Source: Macrostomum lignano
Lineage: Eukaryota
Length of the DNA: 45,664 nucleotides
Assembly: GCA_002269645.1 (NCBI GenBank)
Contig: NIVC01004446.1
Coordinates: 1 to 45,664 of the forward strand
Direction of reading: 5' to 3'
Made by a program: the position numbers and the translations under genes. This document shows, one piece after another, positions 2,027 to 45,664 of this stretch (position 1 is its first letter; each line of letters starts with the position of its first letter). The notes beneath the pieces are model-generated. The model saw nothing but the letters and a program-made list of their open reading frames with translations, was not told the origin of the DNA and did not search any database.

Positions 2027-2070
2027 GTTGGTTGATTTATTGGTTGGTTGATTGATTGATTGTTTGATTA

Positions 2071-2106
<36 letters not shown>

Positions 2107-2208
2107 CTGACTTATTGGCTCCTTGGTTGATTGATGGATGGATGAATGGATTGATTGATTGATTGATTGATTGATTAATTGATTGATTGATTGATTGATT
2201 GATGATTA

Positions 2209-2255
<47 letters not shown>

Positions 2256-2275
2256 AATTGATTGATTGAATGATT

Positions 2276-2366
<91 letters not shown>

Positions 2367-2375
2367 AATTGATTG
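1794..2375. repeat. (ATTG)n/(TGAT)n tetranucleotide microsatellite, ~580 bp, in the 3' UTR of the ion-channel gene
   Basis: Read directly; interrupted by GGTT, TAAT and GGAT variants; begins at the stop codon. Confidence 0.98.
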
Positions 2376-2380
2376 CTTCC

Positions 2381-2466
2381 ATGGTTCCATTATTGATTAT
2401 TTAGTTCCATTATTAATTGATTGGTTCTATTGTTGATTGATTGGTTCCATTATTGAAGTATTGGTT
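2381..2466. repeat. Degenerate 20-bp tandem repeat (TTGGTTCCATTATTGATTGA-like), ~4 copies
   Basis: atggttccattattgattat / ttagttccattattaattga / ttggttctattgttgattga / ttggttccattattgaagta align at a 20-bp period. Confidence 0.75.
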
Positions 2467-2532
2467 TGATTGTTTTGCCTGCTTAAGACGGTAATTATTT
2501 AATTAACTTTTTGCATTGATACCAGTATATTT

Positions 2533-2538
2533 ATTAAA
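2533..2538 (+). promoter_or_regulatory. Candidate polyadenylation signal (ATTAAA) for the ion-channel gene
   Basis: First AWTAAA hexamer I found after the microsatellite. The context is AT-rich, so it may be chance. Confidence 0.25.
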
Positions 2539-3389
2539 TAGTAAGTTGGTTAATTTATGGCTTGATTTTTTACTAAAGGATTGAATACGATAACATGATG
2601 TATTGATAAAAAATCGTACGTTCTGTTTATTTATTTTGGTTGTGTCTAACTTTGTATCTATAACTGTCTGATCAATTGTTTGATTTGCATCAAACGAAAT
2701 TTTATTATTATTTTAAAATTCTAATTTATTTTTTTGTGAAAAGAGTTTTATTAATATTGGCTACTCCAATTCAAAGCAACTGGATTGCAGCGGAGACTTT
2801 TGTCAGACCAACAATCAGCAACGAATAACCATTTTGAGCAATTCATTTTTACTAGCGACTCATTTTTCGCATTCCTTCGTTTTTATATACGCAATCTGCA
2901 AACTTACTCTTGTCTCGATTTTTAATACTCTTATAGCATATTCGAAAATTCACGGAGAAAGCATTTTCCTAATGAATAAGGCGGATCAAATTCAAGATAA
3001 AGAATTTTATAATTTTTAGATCGCGTCTGCCGGCACATGCATGTACTTCGAATATTGTACCAGTTTTATATTTGTTGTACGAATAGGACTTTGCTTTGCA
3101 TTAATTTTTTACTGTTTTAATCAGGTTGTAAAAGCTTAAAGGTTGTAACCGATCGATTTTTCATTCTATACTTTTTCCTCTACAGTCTATATACAGTCCT
3201 ATATATCGAAATTATTTATATCGAAAAAAAAAATACCCTTAGAAATCTTACAAATGATAATTTTAACCCAAGTTTTGTTATCAAAGCAAGAGAAGAGATG
3301 CTTGCAAATAGACTTGCTATTTTAATGCCGGAAATTAAAATACATTGTAATCATACTTTGACTGACAAATTATCCGCTTGATTTCTTTG

Positions 3390-3401
3390 TTTATTTTTAT
3401 T
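3390..3401 (-). promoter_or_regulatory. Candidate polyadenylation signal (two AATAAA hexamers) for the giant mucin-like gene
   Basis: Plus strand tttatttttatt = AATAAAAATAAA on the minus strand, ~240 nt downstream of the stop codon. Confidence 0.45.
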
Positions 3402-3641
3402 GTTAAGAAATGAAATTTATATTGGGTGAGACTTTTAAATAGGAGAATAAAGATATTTTGTTATGATAGCACTGGTATGCGCTTATAACGAGGAAAAATT
3501 ATTAAAATTTAAGGATGTTAAAGAAATTTTTGTTTAAATTAACAACTACTCTAAAAAGCCTCCACCACAGCCAAGTGGATAATTATAGTTTTCGTCAAAT
3601 CGAAACAAAGCAGATTTCGATCTTCATTGAGATCAGCTGAA

Positions 3642-3791
3642 TCAAGCCTCAACACAATGACATTTATTAATGTGATACAAAGTGACGTCCATTTTGGAGC
3701 CGTCCTTGCAGTAGACAGTCTTCTTGGTAGGCTTCGGCTTGTAGCTTTCGGGTTTGCAGCACTGGCACACGCCCATCACCTTGACCTCGCC
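3642..3791 (-). CDS. Last exon: second half of the C-terminal cystine-knot (CTCK) domain
   Basis: ttgtAG acceptor (3792-3793). Translation GEVKVMGVCQCCKPESYKPKPTKKTVYCKDGSKMDVTLYHINKCHCVEA* (150 nt) has the CxCC...C...CxC pattern. Absent from the ORF track. Confidence 0.92.
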   Translation of the reverse strand, partial: GEVKVMGVCQCCKPESYKPKPTKKTVYCKDGSKMDVTLYHINKCHCVEA

Positions 3792-6700
3792 CTACAACGA
3801 TTTAAAAAAGGCACAGAGTGCAAATGAACTTATCAAAGTGAGTAAGTTGAAAGCCTACCAATTAAGCTAGAACATTTATGATCCCGTGCCATGTAACACT
3901 GGCTCACTCAGCATCGAATGTCCCGCCCCATGCACTTCCGATATCCGCTCACCTTGTCATTAACCGTCACTTGGTGGCTAGACGGGCAACCGCCGGTGCA
4001 CCAGTCGACCCAAATTGGCCGCACCAGCTTGCAGGTCGGCTTTCCAGGTCTGCGCAACTCGCGCACAGGCTTTTTATCTCGATGGCAAACGCGCAGGTAG
4101 GCCCTGAAGCAGCACGCCTTGGCGGAGTCCAGCACCCGGCTGACCAAATCTCCTGAACTCGCCAGCAGTTGCTGATCAGCCTGGGTGCATGGAGGCACCT
4201 CGTCGGGCGTCAACGGTCGCGATGTCAGGCGGCCGTGCAGGCAGACGGTCTTGCTGCAGTTGCCGAGGTAGTCAATGCTGGTGAATCCGTTCGGATAAGC
4301 CCTGCCGTCGGCGTCTCGACAGCCGAAACAGTCCTTCAGACTGATGCAGGCGCCCGTGGCCGAGTCGCGAACTGTGCCAGGCTTGCACTGGCAGCTTGGA
4401 CGGCAGTTCGAGTCAGGCTGCTCGGCGGTGTCGGGGTTGAGCAGCTGCTGACAGGTGGTTTCGCACCTGCCCGAATCCGAATAGACGTCGTCCGGTCGGC
4501 AGCAGGCGCCCTCGTCGCCGAAACAGTCGGTGTACTTTTGAGCCGGGCCCGAGCACTCGGCACCACCGCCGCTGGCCGGCCGAGCAATGGAGCTGAAGTT
4601 GAGTTTGAATTTGAGGCACCGTCTTAGTGATCGTTAGGTTAGTTTTATTCACAAATCTTTGACGTCGGTGAATGATGACTATTTTAGTGTTTCCCATTAT
4701 TTATCCCGATGACATGTGTATTATACCAATGTGGTTCGAACCAATATTTTTGCAAGAATCATTACAGATAATGGAGTCAAAGGTGTTAATGATCTGTTTG
4801 TTCATAAAATACATGTGCATTTTCAGTGTTTCTGATCTACAATATTCATTTTTAAAAATTGTTTTGACTCTTTCAAACTGTATAAGTACGGTCCCTTTGT
4901 AAAGCCATACTATATTCACAGCTAAGCGCAACTCACCGCGACCACAGCTGTTTTCCAGTTCCGCAGGCGACATTGCAGCCGCCCACCTTCTTCCAGGTGG
5001 ACCATTCGCAGTCCACAGAGCAGCTCTTCTCCTCGCAGACGAACCGTCCGTTGGTGCAGGTGCAGGTGTTGCAGTCCTTCGCCACCGTGGAGCCCGGCGG
5101 CATCAGCCGGCTGGAGTCGTCGGGATGAGCGCAGCTGCAGCCGTCAACGCTGACGCAGGTGTCACCTTCGCGAACTCGGTCGCCTGAGCAGCCACAGCCC
5201 TGCGTGAAATTTGATTTTCAACGTTTAAAATAAACGCTTAAATACAGATGGTCTCTCGTCTAGAAATTTTAAAGCGAACTTTCGATCAGAAACGGTGCTT
5301 AAGTGATTCTGACACACACGTATAAGTTTCTGATTCTTTTGAATCGTTGCAACCATCAACGGTAGCTTCTAGCGATCCCTAGGATAAAATGTCTAGACAA
5401 AAGTACATTTAATCTATATAACCAAATTCGGCAGACTGATCCGGCAAGTAACGGAATGGACAGGTTTTTCCGGGTTTTTACTTCTCTTTGGTGTCCGGTG
5501 AGACCACAGGAGCACCCATAAAGTAGCCTAGAGTCTGGCACCGGATCAAATCAAATGCATTGAATGAATCCCATTCGAAACGTCCCATTCAGGTGAATAC
5601 TTACCAAAAGCTCTAGTTAAAATTCTAAAGTGGAAATCCTATTTTCAGTATGTTCTAAAGGCTCAAAAGTCGATTTTTATGATATCCAAACGAGCGCTTG
5701 AGAACAAAAAGTTGAGGGTCAGTCTCCGGTCCTAGTTGGCTTGGTCGGTAGCCCGACTTTTGGTGCTTAAGTCCACTGTTCTGCTTTATTCTACCTTGGG
5801 CACTGAATGTACTGGCGTCGCTAATGTGTTTGGAATGACAGCAGATTTGCGAAATCATCGATGCTTCCATATCACCCATTTTGCCGCTTTAAATGAATCA
5901 GCTGCTCACCTGAACGCATCCCACATCCTGGCACTCCTTGTTTTGTCGGACATCCTCGCAGGTTCGCCAGCAGCGGGTGGCACACGGGATGACTGTCTCC
6001 GGGCCGCTGCACTTGGTCTCGTTGCAGGGCATCAGGGCTGGCTTGTACTCGCGGTCGCGGCACTCTTGGCCATCGTTGGCCGAGGGCCTCAGCACCGGCC
6101 GAGTTCGAACTTGTTCGCCAACTCCACAGCTAGGATTGTACACCGTGCCGACGCAGGGCTTGACAGTTTCGCTCCATTCCGACCACTTGCCGACTAGGCA
6201 GTCAACGGGGCACTGCCGGGTGCAGCTGACGATGTCGTAGGTGCTGGGACAGGCACGGCCGCCGTTCGCTGGGTGCTGCGTGACGCTGCGCAGTCGGAGC
6301 CGCTGGCCGACGGCGGTCGGGTTCACGCCGTCGCACTGGGCAAAGCAGGTGCCATTAGTCCAGTCAGACACCTGCAGAGTCGGTTGTTTTATCAGAGCAG
6401 AAAAGTATTAGAGAAGGAAACGTGACATTGTGAATTCGGACAGCCAGTCAGTTTCTAAAGTATGCCGACATGTATCAGATAGACATTACTGAGACAAGAA
6501 GAAACGCAGATTCAACTAGCAAGACCCTGGTTTCCCTCATGCTTGTGTTCCAATAGGCTTTCTTTAAAGATTTACTTTGAAAAATACATAAAGGACACAA
6601 AATTTCCTAAACGTATTCTTGATTTAAACGTTCCGAAACTTGTACGCAGCAACAGCAACAGCAAACCCCGTCACCTAAACTCACGCTTTCACCAGGTACA

Positions 6701-9700
6701 GAGAAGTTACACAATGCCCTTCAGTGATTCTGCTGCCAAAAGAGCATATCAACCGGTCTGTGATCAGGATGCCATAACTAGTAAAGGCCCTTCTACATAC
6801 ATTTGTGGATCACAAGTGACAATTCTTAACTTCTGCACTGTCTTTCGTTGAGCATGCGGTATGATTTTCGGAAGCTGATCGGTACTTTAAAGAGTTTTTT
6901 ATCCCACTATCTCGCAAATTATTTTATCTTTCCCAGCTGTACAAACCTGACAGTCAACTGGCAGTCGGCAGTCCTGCTGATTGCACGGCTGCTGGTCCGT
7001 GTCGAGGCGGCCGCTCTCGTCAGGCGCACAGTTCCTCGTGTCGTTGACGCACAAGCGAACGCAGATGCGGCTGCGTCGTCGCGTTCCTGTGCCGCACGGC
7101 GCGCTGCAGCCGGAGAAGTCCGACCATTCCGACCAGCTGGGAGGCGGGATCTCCGAGCTCATCTGACCGGGCAGGCACACTCGCTGGTGGGTGTAGAAGC
7201 TGCAGTAGCAAACGCCGCAGCCAGTGTCCGACGGCATGGTCTCTCCGGGCGACACCAGGTTGCCGAATCTGTCTACGCAGCCCGGACAGCGCTGCGCGTT
7301 GCACGGCTCCGAGTCGACAGCGGAACCAACGCAGGCCCTGCCCGAACCGCGGCGTTGCGTCGCAATCGATCTGGTGCGCGTCCGGCTACCGCCATCACAG
7401 GGCCGGCTGCAGGGACCCCAGTCCGACCAGGGGCCCCAGCTGCAGTCGCAGTTCGCGGTGGGCGCACACGTTGCAATACCATTCAGGCAGCGGGCCTGGA
7501 GCAGGGGCCGCAGCGCATTGCCGTGAGGTCGCACGTGCATTGATCAGGCTTGACGCACACGCCGGTTGATTCATCGAAGACCAATCCGGAGTCGCAGAAG
7601 CAACCCGTGCTGCAGGTAGTCACATCTGTGCAGGTCTCATTTGTCACGTGGCCGCACGTGTAAGGACACGAAGTGCTGCTGCATTGTCGGACAACCTTGC
7701 CACCCGAGCAAGCTGCCGAGGTCGTGGTGGAACCGCACGGATGCACATTGCATAGGGCGCTCGAAGTGCTGGCGTCGTCCTTCAGGCAAGCTCCAGAAGA
7801 TTTGCGGGAACGCGTTTTGATGCCTCCATTACAGGACTGGGAGCACTCGGACCACGCAGACCACTGACTCCAAATGCAAGGACAGTCATGAGTGTTGCAA
7901 AGTTCTGAATCCTGAAAAAGGTGAATAAAGTATAATGCAAACACAATACGCTCTTATTAGGAAACTAAAACACTTTAAACAAAGTAACAAAACCACAGCT
8001 TTACCGTAAACTCATTTGCACTGCAAGAAGCACCTCCAGGTTTTGCAGGAGACGCTACAGTGCGATTCCGAAAACGTAGTCCAGATCCACAGCTGGCTGA
8101 ACAAGCACTCCATGGCTGCCATTGACTCCATTGACAGTTCTGACTGCAGTTCGATATAACACAACGAAGTGCGCCATTATCGCAATTGCAGTGACCACAA
8201 GAAAAAAGCACGCTAACACCAGACTCTAAAATATCACCGTCGCTGACTTTCTCAGAAGGCGAAGTCAATCCCTCCGATCCATCCAGCTCAACCCAAACGT
8301 CAGAAGGATGCACACCGGTCTGTTGCAAACTTCACCAGCTGAGAACTGACACTCGCAGTCGCCACGAGATAGACACGGAGGAGGCGTAGCTACAAAACGA
8401 AAAAAATAAAGTAAAAACAATCAAAAAACCCTCAAACCACACTATAAAAATTGCGAACACATACTTGGCTCAACAATTATGCAGGTTGCAGTAGCCGTCG
8501 CCACAACGCTTGGCGTAGTCGTTGCCGAAGTTGTTGACACTGTCGTACTACTAGAATTGGGAGTAGTAGTGGTGTCGCTGTTGTTGTTGTTGTGCTGGGC
8601 GTTGTTGTTGTCGGCGTAGTTGTAGTTGTGCTCGGTGTCGTGGTAGTTGATGTTGTTGTTGTGCTCGTTGTGCTTCTCGGTGTTGTTGTCAGCTTTGTGA
8701 AGCAGCCTAGCATGCTGACTTGAATCGGGATCCTGTTACCGCCCTCGTTTTTGAAATTAAAAACCAGAGCGATTCGATAAGCTTCCAAGCCCAATCCACC
8801 AACAGAGGCGCACGAGATGAAGTCGAACATGCAGGTGGCTACTTCAGCGGCACCGACAGCCAGTTTGACTGAAGTGAATGGAGACACCGCGTCTGTTGCA
8901 TACTTTAGCTCCATTGACGTAATGAATCCTGGACTTGTCGTTGAAATCGATATTAGTCCGATGATCGAGTTACTAAGATCGTCTCCGCTGACGTTGAAAT
9001 CGAACTGAATGCTATCCGTTGCTGTCGACGGTGTTGCCACACGGTTTATATTCAGTCCTGTGCTAGTCGGACGCAGCAGGTCGTACTCGACGTCGGAATC
9101 AGTCCAACGCCCTGAGTGAGGCGCTCACCGTGATGTCGCTCACACTTATTATGCTGCTGTCGGCCATGAGATTTGTGTCAAGACAACGAGTGAAGCTTGT
9201 AGTCGACTTGCTCTTCACGCCTTCTGTAGTGGTAGACGTGCTAGATGTCGTCGTTGTCGTTGTCGGCGTAGTCGTGGTCGACGTCGACGTCGTCGGAGTT
9301 GTTGTAGTAGTAGGCGTTGTCGTAGTAGTGGTAGGCGTTGTCGTAGTAGTGTAGGCGTTGTCGTAGTAGTCGTCGGCGTTGTCGTAGTAGTCGTAGGCGT
9401 TGTCGTAGTAGTCGTCGGCGTTGTTGTTGTTGTGGTAGGCGTTGTCGTAGTAGTCGTAGGCGTTGTTGTTGTTGTGGTGGTGGTTTGTGTCGTCTTTTGT
9501 GGGAAGCAGCCATATATTCCGATCTGTATGTCAACAGAATTCCGATCGGTCACTGAATTGTAGAAAATCTCAAATCGCATCACCGTCGAGTTGATGGTCG
9601 AAGGCGTCGGCGGGATGCAGGCAAGCAGATTTGACTTGCACGCGGTGAGGTTCGCGCCAGAGAAGAAGTAAGTGTCCCAGGTGACTTGCGTGTACGTCTG

Positions 9701-21700: not shown

Positions 21701-24700
21701 GAGGATGCGCATTGCTGATAACGGAATCACGGTCTCGTCAGCCAGACCATCAAAATCGATGCAAATTCCAGGTTGAGTAGTTGTTGCCGTCGTCGTTGTC
21801 GTTGTCGTTGTCCTAGGAGTAGTAGTGGTGCTCGCTGTTGTTGTTGTTGTGCTGGGCGTTGTTGTTGTCGGCGTAGTTGTAGTTGTGCTCGGTGTCGTGG
21901 TAGTTGATGTTGTTGTTGTGCTCGTTGTGCTTCTCGGTGTTGTTGTCAGCTTTGTGAAGCAGCCTAGCATGCTGACTTGAATCGGGATCCTGTTACCGCC
22001 CTCGTTTTTGAAATTAAAAACCAGAGCGATTCGATAAGCTTCCAAGCCCAATCCACCAACAGAGGCGCACGAGATGAAGTCGAACATGCAGGTGGCTACT
22101 TCAGCGCACCGACAGCCAGTTTGACTGAAGTGAATGGAGACACCGCGTCTGTTGCATACTTTAGCTCCATTGACGTAATGAATCCTGGACTTGTCGTTGA
22201 AATCGATATTAGTCCGATGATCGAGTTACTAAGATCGTCTCCGCTGACGTTGAAATCGAACTGAATGCTATCCGTTGCTGTCGACGGTGTTGCCACACGG
22301 TTTATATTCAGTCCTGTGCTAGTCGGACGCAGCAGGTCGTACTCAGACGTCGGAATCAGTCCAACGCCCTGAGTGGAGGCGCTCACCGTGATGTCGCTCA
22401 CACTTATTATGCTGCTGTCGGCCATGAGATTTGTGTCAAGACAACGAGTGAAGCTTGTAGTCGACTTGCTCTTCACGCCTTCTGTAGTGGTAGACGTGCT
22501 AGATGTCGTCGTTGTCGTTGTCGGCGTAGTCGTGGTCGACGTCGACGTCGTCGGAGTTGTTGTAGTAGTAGGCGTTGTCGTAGTAGTGGTAGGCGTTGTC
22601 GTAGTAGTCGTCGGCGTTGTCGTAGTAGTCGTCGGCGTTGTCGTAGTAGTCGTCGGCGTTGTTGTTGTTGTGGTAGGCGTTGTCGTAGTAGTCGTAGGCG
22701 TTGTTGTTGTTGTGGTGGCGGTTTGTGTCGTCTTTTGTGGGAAGCAGCCATATATTCCGATCTGTATGTCAACAGAATTCCGATCGGTCACTGAATTGTA
22801 GAAAATCTCAAATCGCATCACCGTCGAGTTGATGGTCGAAGGCGTCGGCGGGATGCAGGCAAGCAGATTTGACTTGCACGCGGTGAGGTTCGCGCCAGAG
22901 AAGAAGTAAGTGTCCCAGGTGACTTGCGTGTACGTCTGCTTATTGTACAACCGCACAGCCTGAATGTCAGGAGTGTTGAAAGCGAGCTGGATCCGACCGA
23001 CAATGGTGGCTTCTGGACTGCCTGCAGACGTTTCAATTTCAATCAGGATGTTCTCGTTCGGATTCGCAAACGACGAAGGCGTCGGTCTGTTTAGGTTGAA
23101 TGGAACAGGCGAAGACAGACGCAAGTAGTTCAACTCAGAGGTGGCGTAACCGCCAAGCTGGGTTCCGTTGAGGATGCGCATTGCTGATAACGGAATCACG
23201 GTCTCGTCAGCCAGACCATCAAAATCGATGCAAATTCCAGGTTGAGTAGTTGTTGCCGTCGTCGTTGTCGTTGTCGTTGTCCTAGGAGTAGTAGTGGTGC
23301 TCGCTGTTGTTGTTGTTGTGCTGGGCGTTGTTGTTGTCGGCGTAGTTGTAGTTGTGCTCGGTGTCGTGGTAGTTGATGTTGTTGTTGTGCTCGTTGTGCT
23401 TCTCGGTGTTGTTGTCAGCTTTGTGAAGCAGCCTAGCATGCTGACTTGAATCGGGATCCTGTTACCGCCCTCGTTTTTGAAATTAAAAACCAGAGCGATT
23501 CGATAAGCTTCCAAGCCCAATCCACCAACAGAGGCGCACGAGATGAAGTCGAACATGCAGGTGGCTACTTCAGCGCACCGACAGCCAGTTTGACTGAAGT
23601 GAATGGAGACACCGCGTCTGTTGCATACTTTAGCTCCATTGACGTAATGAATCCTGGACTTGTCGTTGAAATCGATATTAGTCCGATGATCGAGTTACTA
23701 AGATCGTCTCCGCTGACGTTGAAATCGAACTGAATGCTATCCGTTGCTGTCGACGGTGTTGCCACACGGTTTATATTCAGTCCTGTGCTAGTCGGACGCA
23801 GCAGGTCGTACTCAGACGTCGGAATCAGTCCAACGCCCTGAGTGGAGGCGCTCACCGTGATGTCGCTCACACTTATTATGCTGCTGTCGGCCATGAGATT
23901 TGTGTCAAGACAACGAGTGAAGCTTGTAGTCGACTTGCTCTTCACGCCTTCTGTAGTGGTAGACGTGCTAGATGTCGTCGTTGTCGTTGTCGGCGTAGTC
24001 GTGGTCGACGTCGACGTCGTCGGAGTTGTTGTAGTAGTAGGCGTTGTCGTAGTAGTGGTAGGCGTTGTCGTAGTAGTCGTCGGCGTTGTCGTAGTAGTCG
24101 TCGGCGTTGTCGTAGTAGTCGTCGGCGTTGTTGTTGTTGTGGTAGGCGTTGTCGTAGTAGTCGTAGGCGTTGTTGTTGTTGTGGTGGCGGTTTGTGTCGT
24201 CTTTTGTGGGAAGCAGCCATATATTCCGATCTGTATGTCAACAGAATTCCGATCGGTCACTGAATTGTAGAAAATCTCAAATCGCATCACCGTCGAGTTG
24301 ATGGTCGAAGGCGTCGGCGGGATGCAGGCAAGCAGATTTGACTTGCACGCGGTGAGGTTCGCGCCAGAGAAGAAGTAAGTGTCCCAGGTGACTTGCGTGT
24401 ACGTCTGCTTATTGTACAACCGCACAGCCTGAATGTCAGGAGTGTTGAAAGCGAGCTGGATCCGACCGACAATGGTGGCTTCTGGACTGCCTGCAGACGT
24501 TTCAATTTCAATCAGGATGTTCTCGTTCGGATTCGCAAACGACGAAGGCGTCGGTCTGTTTAGGTTGAATGGAACAGGCGAAGACAGACGCAAGTAGTTC
24601 AACTCAGAGGTGGCGTAACCGCCAAGCTGGGTTCCGTTGAGGATGCGCATTGCTGATAACGGAATCACGGTCTCGTCAGCCAGACCATCAAAATCGATGC

Positions 24701-27700
24701 AAATTCCAGGTTGAGTAGTTGTTGCCGTCGTCGTTGTCGTTGTCGTTGTCCTAGGAGTAGTAGTGGTGCTCGCTGTTGTTGTTGTTGTGCTGGGCGTTGT
24801 TGTTGTCGGCGTAGTTGTAGTTGTGCTCGGTGTCGTGGTAGTTGATGTTGTTGTTGTGCTCGTTGTGCTTCTCGGTGTTGTTGTCAGCTTTGTGAAGCAG
24901 CCTAGCATGCTGACTTGAATCGGGATCCTGTTACCGCCCTCGTTTTTGAAATTAAAAACCAGAGCGATTCGATAAGCTTCCAAGCCCAATCCACCAACAG
25001 AGGCGCACGAGATGAAGTCGAACATGCAGGTGGCTACTTCAGCGCCACCGACAGCCAGTTTGACTGAAGTGAATGGAGACACCGCGTCTGTTGCATACTT
25101 TAGCTCCATTGACGTAATGAATCCTGGACTTGTCGTTGAAATCGATATTAGTCCGATGATCGAGTTACTAAGATCGTCTCCGCTGACGTTGAAATCGAAC
25201 TGAATGCTATCCGTTGCTGTCGACGGTGTTGCCACACGGTTTATATTCAGTCCTGTGCTAGTCGGACGCAGCAGGTCGTACTCAGACGTCGGAATCAGTC
25301 CAACGCCCTGAGTGGAGGCGCTCACCGTGATGTCGCTCACACTTATTATGCTGCTGTCGGCCATGAGATTTGTGTCAAGACAACGAGTGAAGCTTGTAGT
25401 CGACTTGCTCTTCACGCCTTCTGTAGTGGTAGACGTGCTAGATGTCGTCGTTGTCGTTGTCGGCGTAGTCGTGGTCGACGTCGACGTCGTCGGAGTTGTT
25501 GTAGTAGTAGGCGTTGTCGTAGTAGTGGTAGGCGTTGTCGTAGTAGTCGTCGGCGTTGTCGTAGTAGTCGTCGGCGTTGTCGTAGTAGTCGTCGGCGTTG
25601 TTGTTGTTGTGGTAGGCGTTGTCGTAGTAGTCGTAGGCGTTGTTGTTGTTGTGGTGGCGGTTTGTGTCGTCTTTTGTGGGAAGCAGCCATATATTCCGAT
25701 CTGTATGTCAACAGAATTCCGATCGGTCACTGAATTGTAGAAAATCTCAAATCGCATCACCGTCGAGTTGATGGTCGAAGGCGTCGGCGGGATGCAGGCA
25801 AGCAGATTTGACTTGCACGCGGTGAGGTTCGCGCCAGAGAAGAAGTAAGTGTCCCAGGTGACTTGCGTGTACGTCTGCTTATTGTACAACCGCACAGCCT
25901 GAATGTCAGGAGTGTTGAAAGCGAGCTGGATCCGACCGACAATGGTGGCTTCTGGACTGCCTGCAGACGTTTCAATTTCAATCAGGATGTTCTCGTTCGG
26001 ATTCGCAAACGACGAAGGCGTCGGTCTGTTTAGGTTGAATGGAACAGGCGAAGACAGACGCAAGTAGTTCAACTCAGAGGTGGCGTAACCGCCAAGCTGG
26101 GTTCCGTTGAGGATGCGCATTGCTGATAACGGAATCACGGTCTCGTCAGCCAGACCATCAAAATCGATGCAAATTCCAGGTTGAGTAGTTGTTGCCGTCG
26201 TCGTTGTCGTTGTCGTTGTCCTAGGAGTAGTAGTGGTGCTCGCTGTTGTTGTTGTTGTGCTGGGCGTTGTTGTTGTCGGCGTAGTTGTAGTTGTGCTCGG
26301 TGTCGTGGTAGTTGATGTTGTTGTTGTGCTCGTTGTGCTTCTCGGTGTTGTTGTCAGCTTTGTGAAGCAGCCTAGCATGCTGACTTGAATCGGGATCCTG
26401 TTACCGCCCTCGTTTTTGAAATTAAAAACCAGAGCGATTCGATAAGCTTCCAAGCCCAATCCACCAACAGAGGCGCACGAGATGAAGTCGAACATGCAGG
26501 TGGCTACTTCAGCGCCACCGACAGCCAGTTTGACTGAAGTGAATGGAGACACCGCGTCTGTTGCATACTTTAGCTCCATTGACGTAATGAATCCTGGACT
26601 TGTCGTTGAAATCGATATTAGTCCGATGATCGAGTTACTAAGATCGTCTCCGCTGACGTTGAAATCGAACTGAATGCTATCCGTTGCTGTCGACGGTGTT
26701 GCCACACGGTTTATATTCAGTCCTGTGCTAGTCGGACGCAGCAGGTCGTACTCAGACGTCGGAATCAGTCCAACGCCCTGAGTGGAGGCGCTCACCGTGA
26801 TGTCGCTCACACTTATTATGCTGCTGTCGGCCATGAGATTTGTGTCAAGACAACGAGTGAAGCTTGTAGTCGACTTGCTCTTCACGCCTTCTGTAGTGGT
26901 AGACGTGCTAGATGTCGTCGTTGTCGTTGTCGGCGTAGTCGTGGTCGACGTCGACGTCGTCGGAGTTGTTGTAGTAGTAGGCGTTGTCGTAGTAGTGGTA
27001 GGCGTTGTCGTAGTAGTCGTCGGCGTTGTCGTAGTAGTCGTCGGCGTTGTCGTAGTAGTCGTCGGCGTTGTTGTTGTTGTGGTAGGCGTTGTCGTAGTAG
27101 TCGTAGGCGTTGTTGTTGTTGTGGTGGCGGTTTGTGTCGTCTTTTGTGGGAAGCAGCCATATATTCCGATCTGTATGTCAACAGAATTCCGATCGGTCAC
27201 TGAATTGTAGAAAATCTCAAATCGCATCACCGTCGAGTTGATGGTCGAAGGCGTCGGCGGGATGCAGGCAAGCAGATTTGACTTGCACGCGGTGAGGTTC
27301 GCGCCAGAGAAGAAGTAAGTGTCCCAGGTGACTTGCGTGTACGTCTGCTTATTGTACAACCGCACAGCCTGAATGTCAGGAGTGTTGAAAGCGAGCTGGA
27401 TCCGACCGACAATGGTGGCTTCTGGACTGCCTGCAGACGTTTCAATTTCAATCAGGATGTTCTCGTTCGGATTCGCAAACGACGAAGGCGTCGGTCTGTT
27501 TAGGTTGAATGGAACAGGCGAAGACAGACGCAAGTAGTTCAACTCAGAGGTGGCGTAACCGCCAAGCTGGGTTCCGTTGAGGATGCGCATTGCTGATAAC
27601 GGAATCACGGTCTCGTCAGCCAGACCATCAAAATCGATGCAAATTCCAGGTTGAGTAGTTGTTGCCGTCGTCGTTGTCGTTGTCGTTGTCCTAGGAGTAG

Positions 27701-30700
27701 TAGTGGTGCTCGCTGTTGTTGTTGTTGTGCTGGGCGTTGTTGTTGTCGGCGTAGTTGTAGTTGTGCTCGGTGTCGTGGTAGTTGATGTTGTTGTTGTGCT
27801 CGTTGTGCTTCTCGGTGTTGTTGTCAGCTTTGTGAAGCAGCCTAGCATGCTGACTTGAATCGGGATCCTGTTACCGCCCTCGTTTTTGAAATTAAAAACC
27901 AGAGCGATTCGATAAGCTTCCAAGCCCAATCCACCAACAGAGGCGCACGAGATGAAGTCGAACATGCAGGTGGCTACTTCAGCGCCACCGACAGCCAGTT
28001 TGACTGAAGTGAATGGAGACACCGCGTCTGTTGCATACTTTAGCTCCATTGACGTAATGAATCCTGGACTTGTCGTTGAAATCGATATTAGTCCGATGAT
28101 CGAGTTACTAAGATCGTCTCCGCTGACGTTGAAATCGAACTGAATGCTATCCGTTGCTGTCGACGGTGTTGCCACACGGTTTATATTCAGTCCTGTGCTA
28201 GTCGGACGCAGCAGGTCGTACTCAGACGTCGGAATCAGTCCAACGCCCTGAGTGGAGGCGCTCACCGTGATGTCGCTCACACTTATTATGCTGCTGTCGG
28301 CCATGAGATTTGTGTCAAGACAACGAGTGAAGCTTGTAGTCGACTTGCTCTTCACGCCTTCTGTAGTGGTAGACGTGCTAGATGTCGTCGTTGTCGTTGT
28401 CGGCGTAGTCGTGGTCGACGTCGACGTCGTCGGAGTTGTTGTAGTAGTAGGCGTTGTCGTAGTAGTGGTAGGCGTTGTCGTAGTAGTCGTCGGCGTTGTC
28501 GTAGTAGTCGTCGGCGTTGTCGTAGTAGTCGTCGGCGTTGTTGTTGTTGTGGTAGGCGTTGTCGTAGTAGTCGTAGGCGTTGTTGTTGTTGTGGTGGCGG
28601 TTTGTGTCGTCTTTTGTGGGAAGCAGCCATATATTCCGATCTGTATGTCAACAGAATTCCGATCGGTCACTGAATTGTAGAAAATCTCAAATCGCATCAC
28701 CGTCGAGTTGATGGTCGAAGGCGTCGGCGGGATGCAGGCAAGCAGATTTGACTTGCACGCGGTGAGGTTCGCGCCAGAGAAGAAGTAAGTGTCCCAGGTG
28801 ACTTGCGTGTACGTCTGCTTATTGTACAACCGCACAGCCTGAATGTCAGGAGTGTTGAAAGCGAGCTGGATCCGACCGACAATGGTGGCTTCTGGACTGC
28901 CTGCAGACGTTTCAATTTCAATCAGGATGTTCTCGTTCGGATTCGCAAACGACGAAGGCGTCGGTCTGTTTAGGTTGAATGGAACAGGCGAAGACAGACG
29001 CAAGTAGTTCAACTCAGAGGTGGCGTAACCGCCAAGCTGGGTTCCGTTGAGGATGCGCATTGCTGATAACGGAATCACGGTCTCGTCAGCCAGACCATCA
29101 AAATCGATGCAAATTCCAGGTTGAGTAGTTGTTGCCGTCGTCGTTGTCGTTGTCGTTGTCCTAGGAGTAGTAGTGGTGCTCGCTGTTGTTGTTGTTGTGC
29201 TGGGCGTTGTTGTTGTCGGCGTAGTTGTAGTTGTGCTCGGTGTCGTGGTAGTTGATGTTGTTGTTGTGCTCGTTGTGCTTCTCGGTGTTGTTGTCAGCTT
29301 TGTGAAGCAGCCTAGCATGCTGACTTGAATCGGGATCCTGTTACCGCCCTCGTTTTTGAAATTAAAAACCAGAGCGATTCGATAAGCTTCCAAGCCCAAT
29401 CCACCAACAGAGGCGCACGAGATGAAGTCGAACATGCAGGTGGCTACTTCAGCGCACCGACAGCCAGTTTGACTGAAGTGAATGGAGACACCGCGTCTGT
29501 TGCATACTTTAGCTCCATTGACGTAATGAATCCTGGACTTGTCGTTGAAATCGATATTAGTCCGATGATCGAGTTACTAAGATCGTCTCCGCTGACGTTG
29601 AAATCGAACTGAATGCTATCCGTTGCTGTCGACGGTGTTGCCACACGGTTTATATTCAGTCCTGTGCTAGTCGGACGCAGCAGGTCGTACTCAGACGTCG
29701 GAATCAGTCCAACGCCCTGAGTGGAGGCGCTCACCGTGATGTCGCTCACACTTATTATGCTGCTGTCGGCCATGAGATTTGTGTCAAGACAACGAGTGAA
29801 GCTTGTAGTCGACTTGCTCTTCACGCCTTCTGTAGTGGTAGACGTGCTAGATGTCGTCGTTGTCGTTGTCGGCGTAGTCGTGGTCGACGTCGACGTCGTC
29901 GGAGTTGTTGTAGTAGTAGGCGTTGTCGTAGTAGTGGTAGGCGTTGTCGTAGTAGTCGTCGGCGTTGTCGTAGTAGTCGTCGGCGTTGTCGTAGTAGTCG
30001 TCGGCGTTGTTGTTGTTGTGGTAGGCGTTGTCGTAGTAGTCGTAGGCGTTGTTGTTGTTGTGGTGGCGGTTTGTGTCGTCTTTTGTGGGAAGCAGCCATA
30101 TATTCCGATCTGTATGTCAACAGAATTCCGATCGGTCACTGAATTGTAGAAAATCTCAAATCGCATCACCGTCGAGTTGATGGTCGAAGGCGTCGGCGGG
30201 ATGCAGGCAAGCAGATTTGACTTGCACGCGGTGAGGTTCGCGCCAGAGAAGAAGTAAGTGTCCCAGGTGACTTGCGTGTACGTCTGCTTATTGTACAACC
30301 GCACAGCCTGAATGTCAGGAGTGTTGAAAGCGAGCTGGATCCGACCGACAATGGTGGCTTCTGGACTGCCTGCAGACGTTTCAATTTCAATCAGGATGTT
30401 CTCGTTCGGATTCGCAAACGACGAAGGCGTCGGTCTGTTTAGGTTGAATGGAACAGGCGAAGACAGACGCAAGTAGTTCAACTCAGAGGTGGCGTAACCG
30501 CCAAGCTGGGTTCCGTTGAGGATGCGCATTGCTGATAACGGAATCACGGTCTCGTCAGCCAGACCATCAAAATCGATGCAAATTCCAGGTTGAGTAGTTG
30601 TTGCCGTCGTCGTTGTCGTTGTCGTTGTCCTAGGAGTAGTAGTGGTGCTCGCTGTTGTTGTTGTTGTGCTGGGCGTTGTTGTTGTCGGCGTAGTTGTAGT

Positions 30701-39700: not shown

Positions 39701-42700
39701 ATTCGATAAGCTTCCAAGCCCAATCCACCAACAGAGGCGCACGAGATGAAGTCGAACATGCAGGTGGCTACTTCAGCGCACCGACAGCCAGTTTGACTGA
39801 AGTGAATGGAGACACCGCGTCTGTTGCATACTTTAGCTCCATTGACGTAATGAATCCTGGACTTGTCGTTGAAATCGATATTAGTCCGATGATCGAGTTA
39901 CTAAGATCGTCTCCGCTGACGTTGAAATCGAACTGAATGCTATCCGTTGCTGTCGACGGTGTTGCCACACGGTTTATATTCAGTCCTGTGCTAGTCGGAC
40001 GCAGCAGGTCGTACTCGACGTCGGAATCAGTCCAACGCCCTGAGTGGAGGCGCTCACCGTGATGTCGCTCACACTTATTATGCTGCTGTCGGCCATGAGA
40101 TTTGTGTCAAGACAACGAGTGAAGCTTGTAGTCGACTTGCTCTTCACGCCTTCTGTAGTGGTAGACGTGCTAGATGTCGTCGTTGTCGTTGTCGGCGTAG
40201 TCGTGGTCGACGTCGTCGTCGGAGTTGTTGTAGTAGTAGGCGTTGTCGTAGTAGTGGTAGGCGTTGTCGTAGTAGTCGTCGGCGTTGTCGTAGTAGTCGT
40301 CGGCGTTGTCGTAGTAGTCGTCGGCGTTGTCGTAGTAGTCGTCGGCGTTGTTGTTGTTGTGGTAGGCGTTGTCGTAGTAGTCGTAGGCGTTGTTGTTGTT
40401 GTGGTGGGTTTGTGTCGTCTTTTGTGGGAAGCAGCCATATATTCCGATCTGTATGTCAACAGAATTCCGATCGGTCACTGAATTGTAGAAAATCTCAAAT
40501 CGCATCACCGTCGAGTTGATGGTCGAAGGCGTCGGCGGGATGCAGGCAAGCAGATTTGACTTGCACGCGGTGAGGTTCGCGCCAGAGAAGAAGTAAGTGT
40601 CCCAGGTGACTTGCGTGTACGTCTGCTTATTGTACAACCGCACAGCCTGAATGTCAGGAGTGTTGAAAGCGAGCTGGATCCGACCGACAATGGTGGCTTC
40701 TGGACTGCCTGCAGACGTTTCAATTTCAATCAGGATGTTCTCGTTCGGATTGCAAACGACGAAGGCGTCGGTCTGTTTAGGTTGAATGGAACAGGCGAAG
40801 ACAGACGCAAGTAGTTCAACTCAGAGGTGGCGTAACCGCCAAGCTGGGTTCCGTTGAGGATGCGCATTGCTGATAACGGAATCACGGTCTCGTCAGCCAG
40901 ACCATCAAAATCATGCAAATTCCAGGTTGAGTAGTTGTTGCCGTCGTCGTTGTCGTTGTCGTTGTCCTAGGAGTAGTAGTGGTGCTCGCTGTTGTTGTTG
41001 TTGTGCTGGGCGTTGTTGTTGTCGGCGTAGTTGTAGTTGTGCTCGGTGTCGTGGTAGTTGATGTTGTTGTTGTGCTCGTTGTGCTTCTCGGTGTTGTTGT
41101 CAGCTTTGTGAAGCAGCCTAGCATGCTGACTTGAATCGGGATCCTGTTACCGCCCTCGTTTTTGAAATTAAAAACCAGAGCGATTCGATAAGCTTCCAAG
41201 CCCAATCCACCAACAGAGGCGCACGAGATGAAGTCGAACATGCAGGTGGCTACTTCAGCGCCACCGACAGCCAGTTTGACTGAAGTGAATGGAGACACCG
41301 CGTCTGTTGCATACTTTAGCTCCATTGACGTAATGAATCCTGGACTTGTCGTTGAAATCGATATTAGTCCGATGATCGAGTTACTAAGATCGTCTCCGCT
41401 GACGTTGAAATCGAACTGAATGCTATCCGTTGCTGTCGACGGTGTTGCCACACGGTTTATATTCAGTCCTGTGCTAGTCGGACGCAGCAGGTCGTACTCA
41501 GACGTCGGAATCAGTCCAACGCCCTGAGTGGAGGCGCTCACCGTGATGTCGCTCACACTTATTATGCTGCTGTCGGCCATGAGATTTGTGTCAAGACAAC
41601 GAGTGAAGCTTGTAGTCGACTTGCTCTTCACGCCTTCTGTAGTGGTAGACGTGCTAGATGTCGTCGTTGTCGTTGTCGGCGTAGTCGTGGTCGACGTCGA
41701 CGTCGTCGGAGTTGTTGTAGTAGTAGGCGTTGTCGTAGTAGTGGTAGGCGTTGTCGTAGTAGTCGTCGGCGTTGTCGTAGTAGTCGTCGGCGTTGTCGTA
41801 GTAGTCGTCGCGTTGTCGTAGTAGTCGTGGCGTTGTTGTTGTTGTGGTAGGCGTTGTCGTAGTAGTCGTAGGCGTTGTTGTTGTTGTGGTGGCGGTTTGT
41901 GTCGTCTTTTGTGGGAAGCAGCCATATATTCCGATCTGTATGTCAACAGAATTCCGATCGGTCACTGAATTGTAGAAAATCTCAAATCGCATCACCGTCG
42001 AGTTGATGGTCGAAGGCGTCGGCGGGATGCAGGCAAGCAGATTTGACTTGCACGCGGTGAGGTTCGCGCCAGAGAAGAAGTAAGTGTCCCAGGTGACTTG
42101 CGTGTACGTCTGCTTATTGTACAACCGCACAGCCTGAATGTCAGGAGTGTTGAAAGCGAGCTGGATCCGACCGACAATGGTGGCTTCTGGACTGCCTGCA
42201 GACGTTTCAATTTCAATCAGGATGTTCTCGTTCGGATTCGCAAACGACGAAGGCGTCGGTCTGTTTAGGTTGAATGGAACAGGCGAAGACAGACGCAAGT
42301 AGTTCAACTCAGAGGTGGCGTAACCGCCAAGCTGGGTTCCGTTGAGGATGCGCATTGCTGATAACGGAATCACGGTCTCGTCAGCCAGACCATCAAAATC
42401 GATGCAAATTCCAGGTTGAGTAGTTGTTGCCGTCGTCGTTGTCGTTGTCGTTGTCCTAGGAGTAGTAGTGGTGCTCGCTGTTGTTGTTGTTGTTGTGCTG
42501 GGCGTTGTTGTTGTCGGCGTAGTTGTAGTTGTGCTCGGTGTCGTGGTAGTTGATGTTGTTGTTGTGCTCGTTGTGCTTCTCGGTGTTGTTGTCAGCTTTG
42601 TGAAGCAGCCTAGCATGCTGACTTGAATCGGGATCCTGTTACCGCCCTCGTTTTTGAAATTAAAAACCAGAGCGATTCGATAAGCTTCCAAGCCCAATCC

Positions 42701-45664
42701 ACCAACAGAGGCGCACGAGATGAAGTCGAACATGCAGGTGGCTACTTCAGCGCACCGACAGCCAGTTTGACTGAAGTGAATGGAGACACCGCGTCTGTTG
42801 CATACTTTAGCTCCATTGACGTAATGAATCCTGGACTTGTCGTTGAAATCGATATTAGTCCGATGATCGAGTTACTAAGATCGTCTCCGCTGACGTTGAA
42901 ATCGAACTGAATGCTATCCGTTGCTGTCGACGGTGTTGCCACACGGTTTATATTCAGTCCTGTGCTAGTCGGACGCAGCAGGTCGTACTCAGACGTCGGA
43001 ATCAGTCCAACGCCCTGAGTGGAGGCGCTCACCGTGATGTCGCTCACACTTATTATGCTGCTGTCGGCCATGAGATTTGTGTCAAGACAACGAGTGAAGC
43101 TTGTAGTCGACTTGCTCTTCACGCCTTCTGTAGTGGTAGACGTGCTAGATGTCGTCGTTGTCGTTGTCGGCGTAGTCGTGGTCGACGTCGACGTCGTCGG
43201 AGTTGTTGTAGTAGTAGGCGTTGTCGTAGTAGTGGTAGGCGTTGTCGTAGTAGTCGTCGGCGTTGTCGTAGTAGTCGTCGGCGTTGTCGTAGTAGTCGTC
43301 GGCGTTGTTGTTGTTGTGGTAGGCGTTGTCGTAGTAGTCGTAGGCGTTGTTGTTGTTGTGGTGGCGGTTTGTGTCGTCTTTTGTGGGAAGCAGCCATATA
43401 TTCCGATCTGTATGTCAACAGAATTCCGATCGGTCACTGAATTGTAGAAAATCTCAAATCGCATCACCGTCGAGTTGATGGTCGAAGGCGTCGGCGGGAT
43501 GCAGGCAAGCAGATTTGACTTGCACGCGGTGAGGTTCGCGCCAGAGAAGAAGTAAGTGTCCCAGGTGACTTGCGTGTACGTCTGCTTATTGTACAACCGC
43601 ACAGCCTGAATGTCAGGAGTGTTGAAAGCGAGCTGGATCCGACCGACAATGGTGGCTTCTGGACTGCCTGCAGACGTTTCAATTTCAATCAGGATGTTCT
43701 CGTTCGGATTCGCAAACGACGAAGGCGTCGGTCTGTTTAGGTTGAATGGAACAGGCGAAGACAGACGCAAGTAGTTCAACTCAGAGGTGGCGTAACCGCC
43801 AAGCTGGGTTCCGTTGAGGATGCGCATTGCTGATAACGGAATCACGGTCTCGTCAGCCAGACCATCAAAATCGATGCAAATTCCAGGTTGAGTAGTTGTT
43901 GCCGTCGTCGTTGTCGTTGTCGTTGTCCTAGGAGTAGTAGTGGTGCTCGCTGTTGTTGTTGTTGTGCTGGGCGTTGTTGTTGTCGGCGTAGTTGTAGTTG
44001 TGCTCGGTGTCGTGGTAGTTGATGTTGTTGTTGTGCTCGTTGTGCTTCTCGGTGTTGTTGTCAGCTTTGTGAAGCAGCCTAGCATGCTGACTTGAATCGG
44101 GATCCTGTTACCGCCCTCGTTTTTGAAATTAAAAACCAGAGCGATTCGATAAGCTTCCAAGCCCAATCCACCAACAGAGGCGCACGAGATGAAGTCGAAC
44201 ATGCAGGTGGCTACTTCAGCGCCACCGACAGCCAGTTTGACTGAAGTGAATGGAGACACCGCGTCTGTTGCATACTTTAGCTCCATTGACGTAATGAATC
44301 CTGGACTTGTCGTTGAAATCGATATTAGTCCGATGATCGAGTTACTAAGATCGTCTCCGCTGACGTTGAAATCGAACTGAATGCTATCCGTTGCTGTCGA
44401 CGGTGTTGCCACACGGTTTATATTCAGTCCTGTGCTAGTCGGACGCAGCAGGTCGTACTCAGACGTCGGAATCAGTCCAACGCCCTGAGTGGAGGCGCTC
44501 ACCGTGATGTCGCTCACACTTATTATGCTGCTGTCGGCCATGAGATTTGTGTCAAGACAACGAGTGAAGCTTGTAGTCGACTTGCTCTTCACGCCTTCTG
44601 TAGTGGTAGACGTGCTAGATGTCGTCGTTGTCGTTGTCGGCGTAGTCGTGGTCGACGTCGACGTCGTCGGAGTTGTTGTAGTAGTAGGCGTTGTCGTAGT
44701 AGTGGTAGGCGTTGTCGTAGTAGTCGTCGGCGTTGTCGTAGTAGTCGTCGGCGTTGTCGTAGTAGTCGTCGGCGTTGTTGTTGTTGTGGTAGGCGTTGTC
44801 GTAGTAGTCGTAGGCGTTGTTGTTGTTGTGGTGGCGGTTTGTGTCGTCTTTTGTGGGAAGCAGCCATATATTCCGATCTGTATGTCAACAGAATTCCGAT
44901 CGGTCACTGAATTGTAGAAAATCTCAAATCGCATCACCGTCGAGTTGATGGTCGAAGGCGTCGGCGGGATGCAGGCAAGCAGATTTGACTTGCACGCGGT
45001 GAGGTTCGCGCCAGAGAAGAAGTAAGTGTCCCAGGTGACTTGCGTGTACGTCTGCTTATTGTACAACCGCACAGCCTGAATGTCAGGAGTGTTGAAAGCG
45101 AGCTGGATCCGACCGACAATGGTGGCTTCTGGACTGCCTGCAGACGTTTCAATTTCAATCAGGATGTTCTCGTTCGGATTCGCAAACGACGAAGGCGTCG
45201 GTCTGTTTAGGTTGAATGGAACAGGCGAAGACAGACGCAAGTAGTTCAACTCAGAGGTGGCGTAACCGCCAAGCTGGGTTCCGTTGAGGATGCGCATTGC
45301 TGATAACGGAATCACGGTCTCGTCAGCCAGACCATCAAAATCGATGCAAATTCCAGGTTGAGTAGTTGTTGCCGTCGTCGTTGTCGTTGTCGTTGTCCTA
45401 GGAGTAGTAGTGGTGCTCGCTGTTGTTGTTGTTGTGCTGGGCGTTGTTGTTGTCGGCGTAGTTGTAGTTGTGCTCGGTGTCGTGGTAGTTGATGTTGTTG
45501 TTGTGCTCGTTGTGCTTCTCGGTGTTGTTGTCAGCTTTGTGAAGCAGCCTAGCATGCTGACTTGAATCGGGATCCTGTTACCGCCCTCGTTTTTGAAATT
45601 AAAAACCAGAGCGATTCGATAAGCTTCCAAGCCCAATCCACCAACAGAGGCGCACGAGATGAAG
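3642..45664 (-). CDS. Giant secreted gel-forming mucin / SCO-spondin / hemolectin-like glycoprotein (5'-partial): [FA58C-like A - Thr linker - FA58C-like B - Thr linker] x >=25, then vWC-like, 7 TSP1, 3 TIL, CTCK
   Basis: Seven exons reconstructed by hand with GT/AG boundaries and compatible phases: >45664-8465, 8389-8005, 7911-6947, 6371-5910, 5199-4937, 4592-3953, 3791-3642. Introns are 75, 93, 575, 710, 344 and 161 bp. Domain motifs join correctly across junctions (e.g. SANEFT|DSELC, VDCQ|VSDW, GCVQ|GCGC, LWSR|SIARP, VNDK|GEVK). Single-base indels must be assumed at several sites. Confidence 0.9.
3953..4592 (-). CDS. Exon: end of TSP1 #7, TIL #3, vWC-like module, first half of CTCK
   Basis: ttcAG acceptor (4593-4594), phase 2 in, GTGAGC donor; 640 nt open: (R)SIARPASGGGAECSGPAQKYTDC...CETTCQQLL...CRPSCQCKPGTVRDSATGACISLKDC...CHRDKK...CKLVRPIWVDWCTGGCPSS. 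The CxGxC motif is typical of a cystine knot. Confidence 0.92.
4937..5199 (-). CDS. Exon: end of TIL #2, vWC-like module, start of TSP1 #7
   Basis: cgcAG acceptor (5200-5201), GTGAGT donor; 263 nt: GCGCSGDRVREGDTCVSVDGCSCAHPDDSSRLMPPGSTVAKDCNTCTCTNGRFVCEEKSCSVDCEWSTWKKVGGCNVACGTGKQLWSR. Absent from the ORF track. Confidence 0.92.
5910..6371 (-). CDS. Exon: TSP1 #5 and #6 and start of TIL #2
   Basis: tgcAG acceptor (6372-6373), GTGAGC donor; 462 nt in frame with WxxW and RxR TSP1 motifs (VSDWTNGTC...GQRLRLRSV; GKWSEWSE...GEQVRTR) and CATRCWRTC. Confidence 0.93.
6947..7911 (-). CDS. Exon: end of TSP1 #1, TSP1 #2, TIL #1, vWC-like, TSP1 #3, vWC-like, TSP1 #4 (one internal frameshift at ~7485-7535)
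   Basis: tttcAG acceptor (7912-7913), GTTTGT donor. Two overlapping ORFs (7483-7944 and 6899-7540) each carry canonical WSxWSxCSxxC TSP1 motifs. Length 965 nt is one base short of a multiple of 3. Confidence 0.88.
8005..8389 (-). CDS. Exon: vWC-like module with insert, and TSP1 #1 (one internal frameshift, probably at 8327-8329)
   Basis: ttttgtAG acceptor (8390-8391), GTAAAG donor. TTPPPCLSRGDCECQFSAGE(V)LQQ...SCGHCNCDNGALRC...CQWSQWQPWSACSASCGSGLRFRNR. Length 385 nt is one base short for phase 1 in / phase 0 out. Confidence 0.82.
8465..45664 (-). CDS. Giant repeat exon (>37 kb, 5'-partial) encoding >=50 discoidin-like domains separated by Thr-rich mucin linkers
   Basis: A 1956-aa ORF (23565-29435) reads through four units with no stop or intron. 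The unique tail ...TTTTPNSSSTTVSTTSATTTPSVVATATATCIIVEP appears after correcting a 1-bp loss near 8575 and ends at a GTATGT donor (8464). Confidence 0.85.
24897..25382 (-). other. Representative domain B of the repeat unit (162 aa, F5/8 type C / discoidin-like)
   Basis: CLDTNLMADSSIISVSDITVSAS...LLRP...SIQFDFNV...FITSMELKYATDA...EAYRIALV...IPIQVSMLGC aligns by eye with FA58C landmarks (C..LGM.SG.I.DSQITASS; ARL; WLQVDLG; YVTSY.V.YS.DG; ARYIRI; LRLELLGC). No HMM was run. Confidence 0.7.
25383..25682 (-). repeat. Representative nested 21-bp coding repeat (PTTTTTT heptads) in the 100-aa Thr-rich linker 1
   Basis: Plus-strand units such as ggcgttgtcgtagtagtcgtc; 7 copies in standard units and 8 in long units. 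Linker 1 has 70 Thr in 100 aa. Confidence 0.95.
25683..26171 (-). other. Representative domain A of the repeat unit (163 aa, discoidin-like, paralogous to domain B)
   Basis: CIDFDGLADETVIPLSAMRI...YLRLSS...NILIEIE...VMRFEIF...VDIQIGIYGC has terminal Cys residues and the xLELxGC-type ending of FA58C. Its Cys positions (1, 119, 126, last) are the same as in domain B. Confidence 0.6.

Follow-up and report, generated by a model that had tools for sequence, protein, structure and literature searches.

Mlig-ap2 of the flatworm Macrostomum lignano is the surface-binding part of a two-protein temporary glue of duo-gland adhesive organs, with ap1 as its cohesive partner. The protein (GenBank MH586845) is 14,794 amino acids (aa) long, with two vWD, two TIL and an LDL domain in its N-terminal region, a core of 46 central repeats (21 of 255 aa and 25 of 221 aa) that accounts for about three quarters of the chain, and a TIL/TSP-1 C-terminus (PMC6410801). 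It is made in adhesive gland cells and deposited in footprints, and RNA interference (RNAi) against it yields non-adhesive worms; it has Gal-beta1,3-GalNAc and was pulled down with the lectin PNA (PMC6410801). ap2 is conserved in six Macrostomum species, with its function confirmed in further species, and the family has been described in terms of ap2a, the repeat motifs RP-1 and RP-2, and ap2b, the repeats themselves being left unresolved by short reads (PMC8621496). ap2a/ap2b have been reported in M. pusillum, M. spirale, M. tuba, M. hystrix and M. poznaniense (PMC6410801, PMC8621496). Here we analyzed a 45,664-nucleotide (nt) stretch of DNA, contig NIVC01004446.1, referred to in its whole length as the window. 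We conclude, with a probability of roughly 0.78, that the window carries an ap2-type gene from a macrostomid flatworm, represented by its central repeat array and its C-terminal region.

The product encoded in the window is a chain of beta-rich domains, at least 50 in number and each bounded by Cys. They belong to two paralogous types, A and B, alternate with Thr-rich linkers and are followed by TSP1, TIL and VWC-like modules and a cystine knot. It shares with ap2 its giant size, a core built from two large repeat motifs and a C-terminal region of TIL and TSP-1 domains. Along its length it is homologous to M. lignano proteins with peptides in secreted footprints. A first-pass annotation, made from the DNA sequence before the present analysis, had not recognized this architecture, while allowing that it might have been described. 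It had already been described as Mlig-ap2, and homology to M. lignano footprint proteins is clear for both the tail and domain B. The gene is a further member of a published, functionally characterized family and not a new architecture. The same annotation had proposed a secreted scaffold of mucus, adhesive or clot that forms polymers and displays its domains at very high valency; the adhesive role agrees with the experiments on the homologous ap2 (PMC6410801, PMC8621496).

The array occupies a single exon, with the following features (the domains and linkers are those of a representative unit):

8465 to 45664, minus strand: array exon of ~25.3 tandem 1470-bp units, each consisting of A, linker, B and linker; the 5' end is open at the window edge
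8465/8464, minus strand: splice donor of the array exon (ccaa/gtatgt)
23568 to 29573, minus strand: longest uninterrupted reading frame in the array, 2002 aa covering four units; the sole long one
28620 to 29111, minus strand: domain A, 164 aa (CIDFDG...GIYGCF), 4 Cys
28323 to 28619, minus strand: linker 1, 99 aa, 71% Thr and 89% Thr, Ser and Pro together, of the form (TTTTTTP)n
27834 to 28322, minus strand: domain B, 163 aa (CLDTNL...SMLGCF), 4 Cys
27642 to 27833, minus strand: linker 2, 64 aa, 67% Thr

A blastn search of the window with one 1470-bp unit (27500-26031) recovered 24 copies in full, a diverged one in last place and one truncated at the window edge. The copies run head to tail from 45664 down to ~8515 with 97.7-100% identity, several of them at 100%. 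In separate searches, domain A was found in 25 full copies, and domain B in 25 full copies and one that is cut. At least 25 repeats of an A, Thr linker, B, Thr linker unit had been called in the first-pass annotation, and the present measurements confirm the count and closely reproduce the segment lengths. After the last unit, the exon ends in a unique Thr/Ser linker, which runs up to the splice donor as ...TATATCIIVEP. In domains A and B alike, the first residue is Cys and the last three are GCF; aligned to each other they are 25% identical (E 2e-10) with the 4 Cys in common columns, identifying them as paralogous domain types. Linker 1 is a probable region of mucin-type O-glycosylation. In 8 of 25 units it has a 21-nt in-frame insert (unit columns 430-450) that adds 7 residues, as in the units at 42265-40778, 36353-34866 and 21622-20134; this looks like a genuine length polymorphism among otherwise identical units. 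Open reading frames (ORFs) on the plus strand within the array were set aside, since they mirror the Thr codons.

Downstream of the array exon, six further exons and six GT-AG introns of 75-710 nt give a spliced tail of 956 aa:

8005 to 8389, minus strand: tail exon 1, a VWC-like module and the first part of TSP1-1, with a 1-nt frameshift between ~8328 and 8310
6947 to 7911, minus strand: tail exon 2, the end of TSP1-1, TSP1-2 (7878-7735), TIL-1 (7710-7537), a 1-nt frameshift within 7543-7486, TSP1-3 (7444-7286), a VWC-like module (7279-7175) and TSP1-4 (7135-6968)
5910 to 6371, minus strand: tail exon 3, TSP1-5 (6371-6210), TSP1-6 (6200-6009) and the first half of TIL-2
4937 to 5199, minus strand: tail exon 4, the second half of TIL-2, a VWC-like module (5133-5020) and the first half of TSP1-7
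3953 to 4592, minus strand: tail exon 5, the end of TSP1-7, TIL-3 (4504-4328), a VWC-like module (4321-4226) and the first half of the cystine knot (4114-3953, with CTGGC)
3642 to 3791, minus strand: tail exon 6, the second half of the cystine knot (CQCC...CKDG...CHC) and the stop codon

Pfam recognized seven TSP1 stretches and three TIL domains in the tail, with weaker VWC-like matches. The last 103 aa matched Cys_knot (E 7.6e-6, 26.6 bits against a gathering score of 24). A tail of ~950 aa with just these modules had been predicted, in a feature listed from position 3642, and the TGA stop codon lies at 3644-3642 on the minus strand. Cys_knot was also matched in all four homologues scanned, and the corresponding segments of three of them scored above the gathering threshold. 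When the knot was compared with PDB sequences, Norrin was the sole match (E 0.009), and a search of PDB sequences with a cystine-knot profile returned no match. The motifs CTGGC and CHC are present, the chain ends 3 residues past CHC, and the Cys that usually follows CxC in cystine knots is missing in the window tail. The exon model is supported by alignment of the tail with three homologous proteins, two of them RNA-seq contigs, which is collinear and gap-free at 62-64% identity with nearly all Cys invariant. In addition, the mRNA of a homologue (L002) reads in one frame from a Thr-rich linker into the tail (...CLMWEPTTPPLCLARGDCEC...DVWVELD), so that in a relative RNA joins the array to the tail.

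The relatives of the window product are few. Neither domain A nor domain B matched any Pfam family, and word-indexed searches of 5.8 billion proteins, with A and B joined or with a five-sequence A/B alignment, returned nothing. An exhaustive HMMER scan of 1.84 billion representative proteins with the A/B profile produced one credible relative, UniRef100_A0A1I8GJ02, an M. lignano 'VWFD domain-containing protein' with 2 VWD, 2 C8, 2 TIL and 4 LDLa domains followed by B-like and A-like domains. A second match to the profile (P0002), a Val/Ala/Gly-rich repeat protein with ten weak stretches, was judged unrelated. The vWD/C8/TIL/LDLa N-terminal region is thus a feature of the homologue A0A1I8GJ02; the 5' end of the gene in the window lies beyond 45664. 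The best matches of the window tail were Macrostomum proteins, including BOX15_Mlig003285g1 on contig NIVC01002293.1 (GCA_002269645.1); to this protein and to RNA-seq transcripts the tail is 62-64% identical. Upstream of BOX15_Mlig003285g1, annotated as the tail gene, the contig continues for just ~4.7 kb before its end truncates the gene; in this stretch an A-like and then a B-like domain, each followed by a Thr linker, lead into the tail. The A-like domain of NIVC01002293.1 is 56% identical to domain A of the window, and the B-like domain of A0A1I8GJ02 and NIVC01002293.1 is 52% identical to domain B. Note that the B-like domain directly after the LDLa domains of A0A1I8GJ02 (residues ~1255-1560) is identical to the one adjoining the tail on NIVC01002293.1, suggesting either a collapsed array in the older assembly or one domain flanking both array ends. 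The four related tails form three roughly equidistant lineages (62-65% identity), and no database protein closely matches the window. Outside Macrostomum, tail matches were limited to 25-31% identity with generic multi-TSP1 proteins, including a SCO-spondin-like protein of Lineus (E 4e-23).

Tryptic peptides were predicted for the M. lignano homologues and sought in the adhesive-footprint mass spectrometry of PMC6410801 (Dataset S2). Four of six predicted peptides were present there: KDESISFDFNVSGDDGSQSIIGK, LSIISSTPGLITSIQLYK and SSGVAATFTLVK, from the B-like domain, and ACPSTYEVVPCSK, from the tail. Among further exact matches were SANSAEDVATCSNNFIECASIGGLGLQTNR of the B-like domain, SVTLAAGTRPSVIIDGVDFTNSLPYENVR and VNHCDGHDDCGDGSDEIGCK of the N-terminal region, and ELQLSESYPR and FATPVSIDR of the tail and cystine knot. 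The window's nearest relatives are therefore secreted into the glue. In Dataset S2, the best hits annotated for the 7877-nt M. lignano transcript with these peptides are MUC5B and Drosophila Hemolectin (PMC6410801), so a mucin/hemolectin affinity of the N-terminal part was already in the public annotation. When the repeat sequences were sought in the supplements of PMC6410801, only unrelated mass spectrometry rows matched. The words threonine, cystine knot or CTCK, and discoidin are absent from the main texts of PMC6410801 and PMC8621496; the 2021 paper discusses vWD-mediated polymerization in mucins (PMC8621496). The mucin-type linkers, the terminal cystine knot and a fold for the repeats are modest additions to the published picture of ap2.

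The fold of the beads was less clear. Domains A and B gave no match to F5_F8_type_C (PF00754) even at E<=10, and a search of PDB sequences with the A/B profile returned nothing. Profile alignment with hhalign was not significant, either against factor VIII C2 (probability 0.2%) or against four FA58C domains (probability 0.5%, E 0.12); of the sequences used, factor VIII C2 alone was verified against PDB. This non-significant FA58C alignment is in register from the first Cys through a motif resembling I-x-D-x-Q-I-T-A-S-S...W-L-Q-V-D. AlphaFold modeled domain B, from a four-sequence alignment, with ~ten strands at a predicted local distance difference test score (pLDDT) of 62.9 and a predicted template modeling score (pTM) of 0.67, residues 1-54 being unreliable (below 50); the single-sequence model of domain A (pLDDT 39.5) was useless. 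Foldseek found no match for the B model in PDB at E<=1e-3. Its best matches were weak (E 4e-3 to 7e-2, template modeling score 0.34-0.47) and were almost all galactose-binding-domain-like jelly rolls, with APC10/DOC and BIRC6 on top and factor V, CBM32, MAM, other carbohydrate-binding modules (CBMs), the ephrin-receptor ligand-binding domain and laminin LN among the others. The first-pass annotation had called the beads discoidin-like. What holds of this is a weak structural likeness to galactose-binding-type jelly rolls, with no counterpart in Pfam, hhalign or PDB sequence searches; judged from the model, 'discoidin-like' may be a reasonable hunch about the superfold, with family membership not demonstrated.

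Thr/Ser/Pro-rich regions together with a C-terminal cystine knot are shared by the window product with MUC2, MUC5B and von Willebrand factor (VWF), and VWD-C8-TIL assemblies are shared by the N-terminus of the M. lignano homologue. In contrast to gel-forming mucins, the Thr-rich regions of the window are short (64-99 aa) and placed regularly between ~50 globular domains of 163 aa, no CysD-type or other mucin-specific domain was found by Pfam in A or B, and many TSP1 repeats, a domain type absent from mucins, make up much of the C-terminal part. SCO-spondin and insect hemocytin/hemolectin resemble the window product in combining many TSP1 domains with TIL modules, VWC-like modules and a cystine knot at the C-terminus, and resemble its homologue in the N-terminal VWD domains and LDLa repeats. 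SCO-spondin has an FA58C domain after its LDLa cluster. However, this is one domain without a Thr-rich array, whereas the window has ~50 beads, and descent of A and B from FA58C is unproven.

As assembled, the array lacks a continuous open frame. Compared with the intact unit, units 1-24 contain 46 frameshifting indels and the last unit ~5, leaving 4 of the 24 full units frame-intact. Nearly all are 1-nt deletions at four unit columns (27, 768, 1007 and 1370), and at three of the four other units have a substitution (G/C, G/C and C/T). Outside these columns, a G/A site at column 373 and the 21-nt insert, the units show virtually no differences. Of the variable columns 27, 373, 1007 and 1370, several are at or adjoin CpG (GC[G]AA, CC[G]CC, GTG[G/C]CG, CAT[C]GA), which hints at methylation-related base-calling errors or CpG decay. 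Two further 1-nt frameshifts, near 8320 and near 7500, interrupt the unique tail exons; at both sites all homologues, mRNAs included, read through with equal spacing. Once the frameshifts are repaired, no stop codon is left. A-like and B-like domains in positions 1-3300 of the long-read M. lignano contig NIVC01002293.1 are also split by 1-nt shifts, at breaks where the independent model A0A1I8GJ02 reads through and peptides were detected.

Several observations weigh against assigning the window to an ap2-type glue gene. Two antibody peptides of Mlig-ap2, which recur 21 and 26 times in that protein, are absent from all six frames of the window and of the M. lignano locus on NIVC01002293.1. Because these recurrent epitopes are missing, the window is not the published Mlig-ap2. 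The window does have two large motifs repeated dozens of times, but as alternating (AB)x25, whereas Mlig-ap2 is described as a block of 21 x 255 aa followed by one of 25 x 221 aa. Moreover, equating A0A1I8GJ02/BOX15_Mlig003285g1 with Mlig-ap2 rests on matching architecture and footprint peptides, and the footprint dataset also includes non-glue proteins such as actin and vitellogenin. Real frameshifts would mean that the gene is dead. The missing epitopes, the alternating order and an identity to M. lignano proteins of just 52-64% would also fit an ap2 paralogue with another use, such as mucus, egg-shell cement or another gland secretion, in place of the adhesive-organ glue. We consider this improbable, since the tail search returned one ap2-like tail cluster from M. 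lignano (BOX15_Mlig003285g1), and related tails in three about equally distant lineages are what orthologues in deeply diverged congeners would give. No annotated M. lignano protein is close to the window; taken alone, these comparisons would point to the ap2 orthologue of a macrostomid species other than M. lignano and away from a second M. lignano gene.

The frameshifts are most likely long-read consensus errors at paralogous-variant or methylated sites, because they recur at columns substituted in other units, leave no stops after repair, are read through by the homologues and have a counterpart in a related contig. If they were instead genuine, ~50 lesions would have been spread through a true pseudogene by unequal crossing-over. 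The scarcity of frame-intact units, the recurrence of the deletions across units in differing combinations, as with inherited variants, and the additional frameshifts in unique tail sequence point in this direction. Against it stand the virtual identity of the units outside the affected sites with zero stops after repair, the retention of nearly all conserved Cys across the 956-aa tail, the predominance of 1-nt deletions, which are typical of long-read consensus, and the like defect in a long-read M. lignano contig whose protein was detected by mass spectrometry; decay of the gene thus appears to have little chance of being the explanation. A third alternative takes the beads for true F5/8 type C (discoidin) lectin domains in an undescribed architecture related to SCO-spondin or hemocytin. 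Domains that start and end with Cys, as discoidin domains do, the in-register FA58C alignment and the presence of CBM32 modules and factor V among the Foldseek matches are consistent with this proposal, and the homologue's order of VWD, LDLa, jelly-roll, TSP1/TIL and cystine knot recalls that of SCO-spondin. Neither Pfam nor hhalign detected the family, the structural matches stay above E 1e-3 and are led by APC10/DOC and BIRC6, which are not discoidins, the first 54 residues of the model are unreliable, and the architecture is already published as ap2. We therefore regard discoidin membership as doubtful, though less remote than the other two alternatives, and retain the assignment to an ap2-type gene.

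The 3' flank of the gene contains a 21-bp minisatellite (GAAATGGCACCCACTCAAATT) of ~43 copies at 339-1225, and a long (TGAT)n microsatellite of ~146 copies lies at 1794-2456. On the plus strand, the last ~100 residues of an ORF at 1299-1796 weakly matched the end of Pfam Neur_chan_memb (E 4.7e-4, below cut-off). This ORF probably represents the final exon, encoding the M3-M4 loop and M4, of a gene for a Cys-loop receptor subunit, in convergent orientation to the ap2-like gene. An Rfam scan of 1-9000 found nothing.

For the ap2-type product, these features suggest how a glue polymer might be assembled. The cystine knot would dimerize the tails in the endoplasmic reticulum, and N-terminal VWD-C8-TIL assemblies, as seen in the M. 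lignano homologue, would join the heads in the manner of gel-forming mucins and VWF. A dense coat of O-glycans on the Thr linkers would hold the chain in an extended, hydrated state. Once released by exocytosis from the adhesive gland, the polymer could spread on the substrate and bind it multivalently through the ~50 jelly-roll modules and/or their glycans, while its Cys-rich ends would connect to the cohesive partner ap1. A more specific and rather speculative version holds that the ap2 glue is a mucin/VWF-style disulfide polymer, linked tail-to-tail by the hitherto unremarked knot and head-to-head by VWD, with an adhesive core of more than 50 highly diverged discoidin-type lectin domains that derive from the single FA58C of a SCO-spondin-like ancestor and alternate with O-glycosylated linkers. 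If so, the beads would bind the substrate or the glycans of neighboring chains, making the glue an instantly self-crosslinking gel, and the (AB)n order here versus the two blocks of Mlig-ap2 would mean that the array has been reorganized between species.

In conclusion, the window gives the essentially complete repeat core and tail of a probable ap2-type gene. The ap2 repeat core was not assembled in most Macrostomum species studied in 2021, and differences in the repeat units were considered important for adhesion and in need of good genomes (PMC8621496). The suggested structural reading, in which paired jelly-roll-like beads are joined by mucin-type linkers and end in a cystine knot, can guide the production of recombinant single A or B domains for a biomimetic glue.

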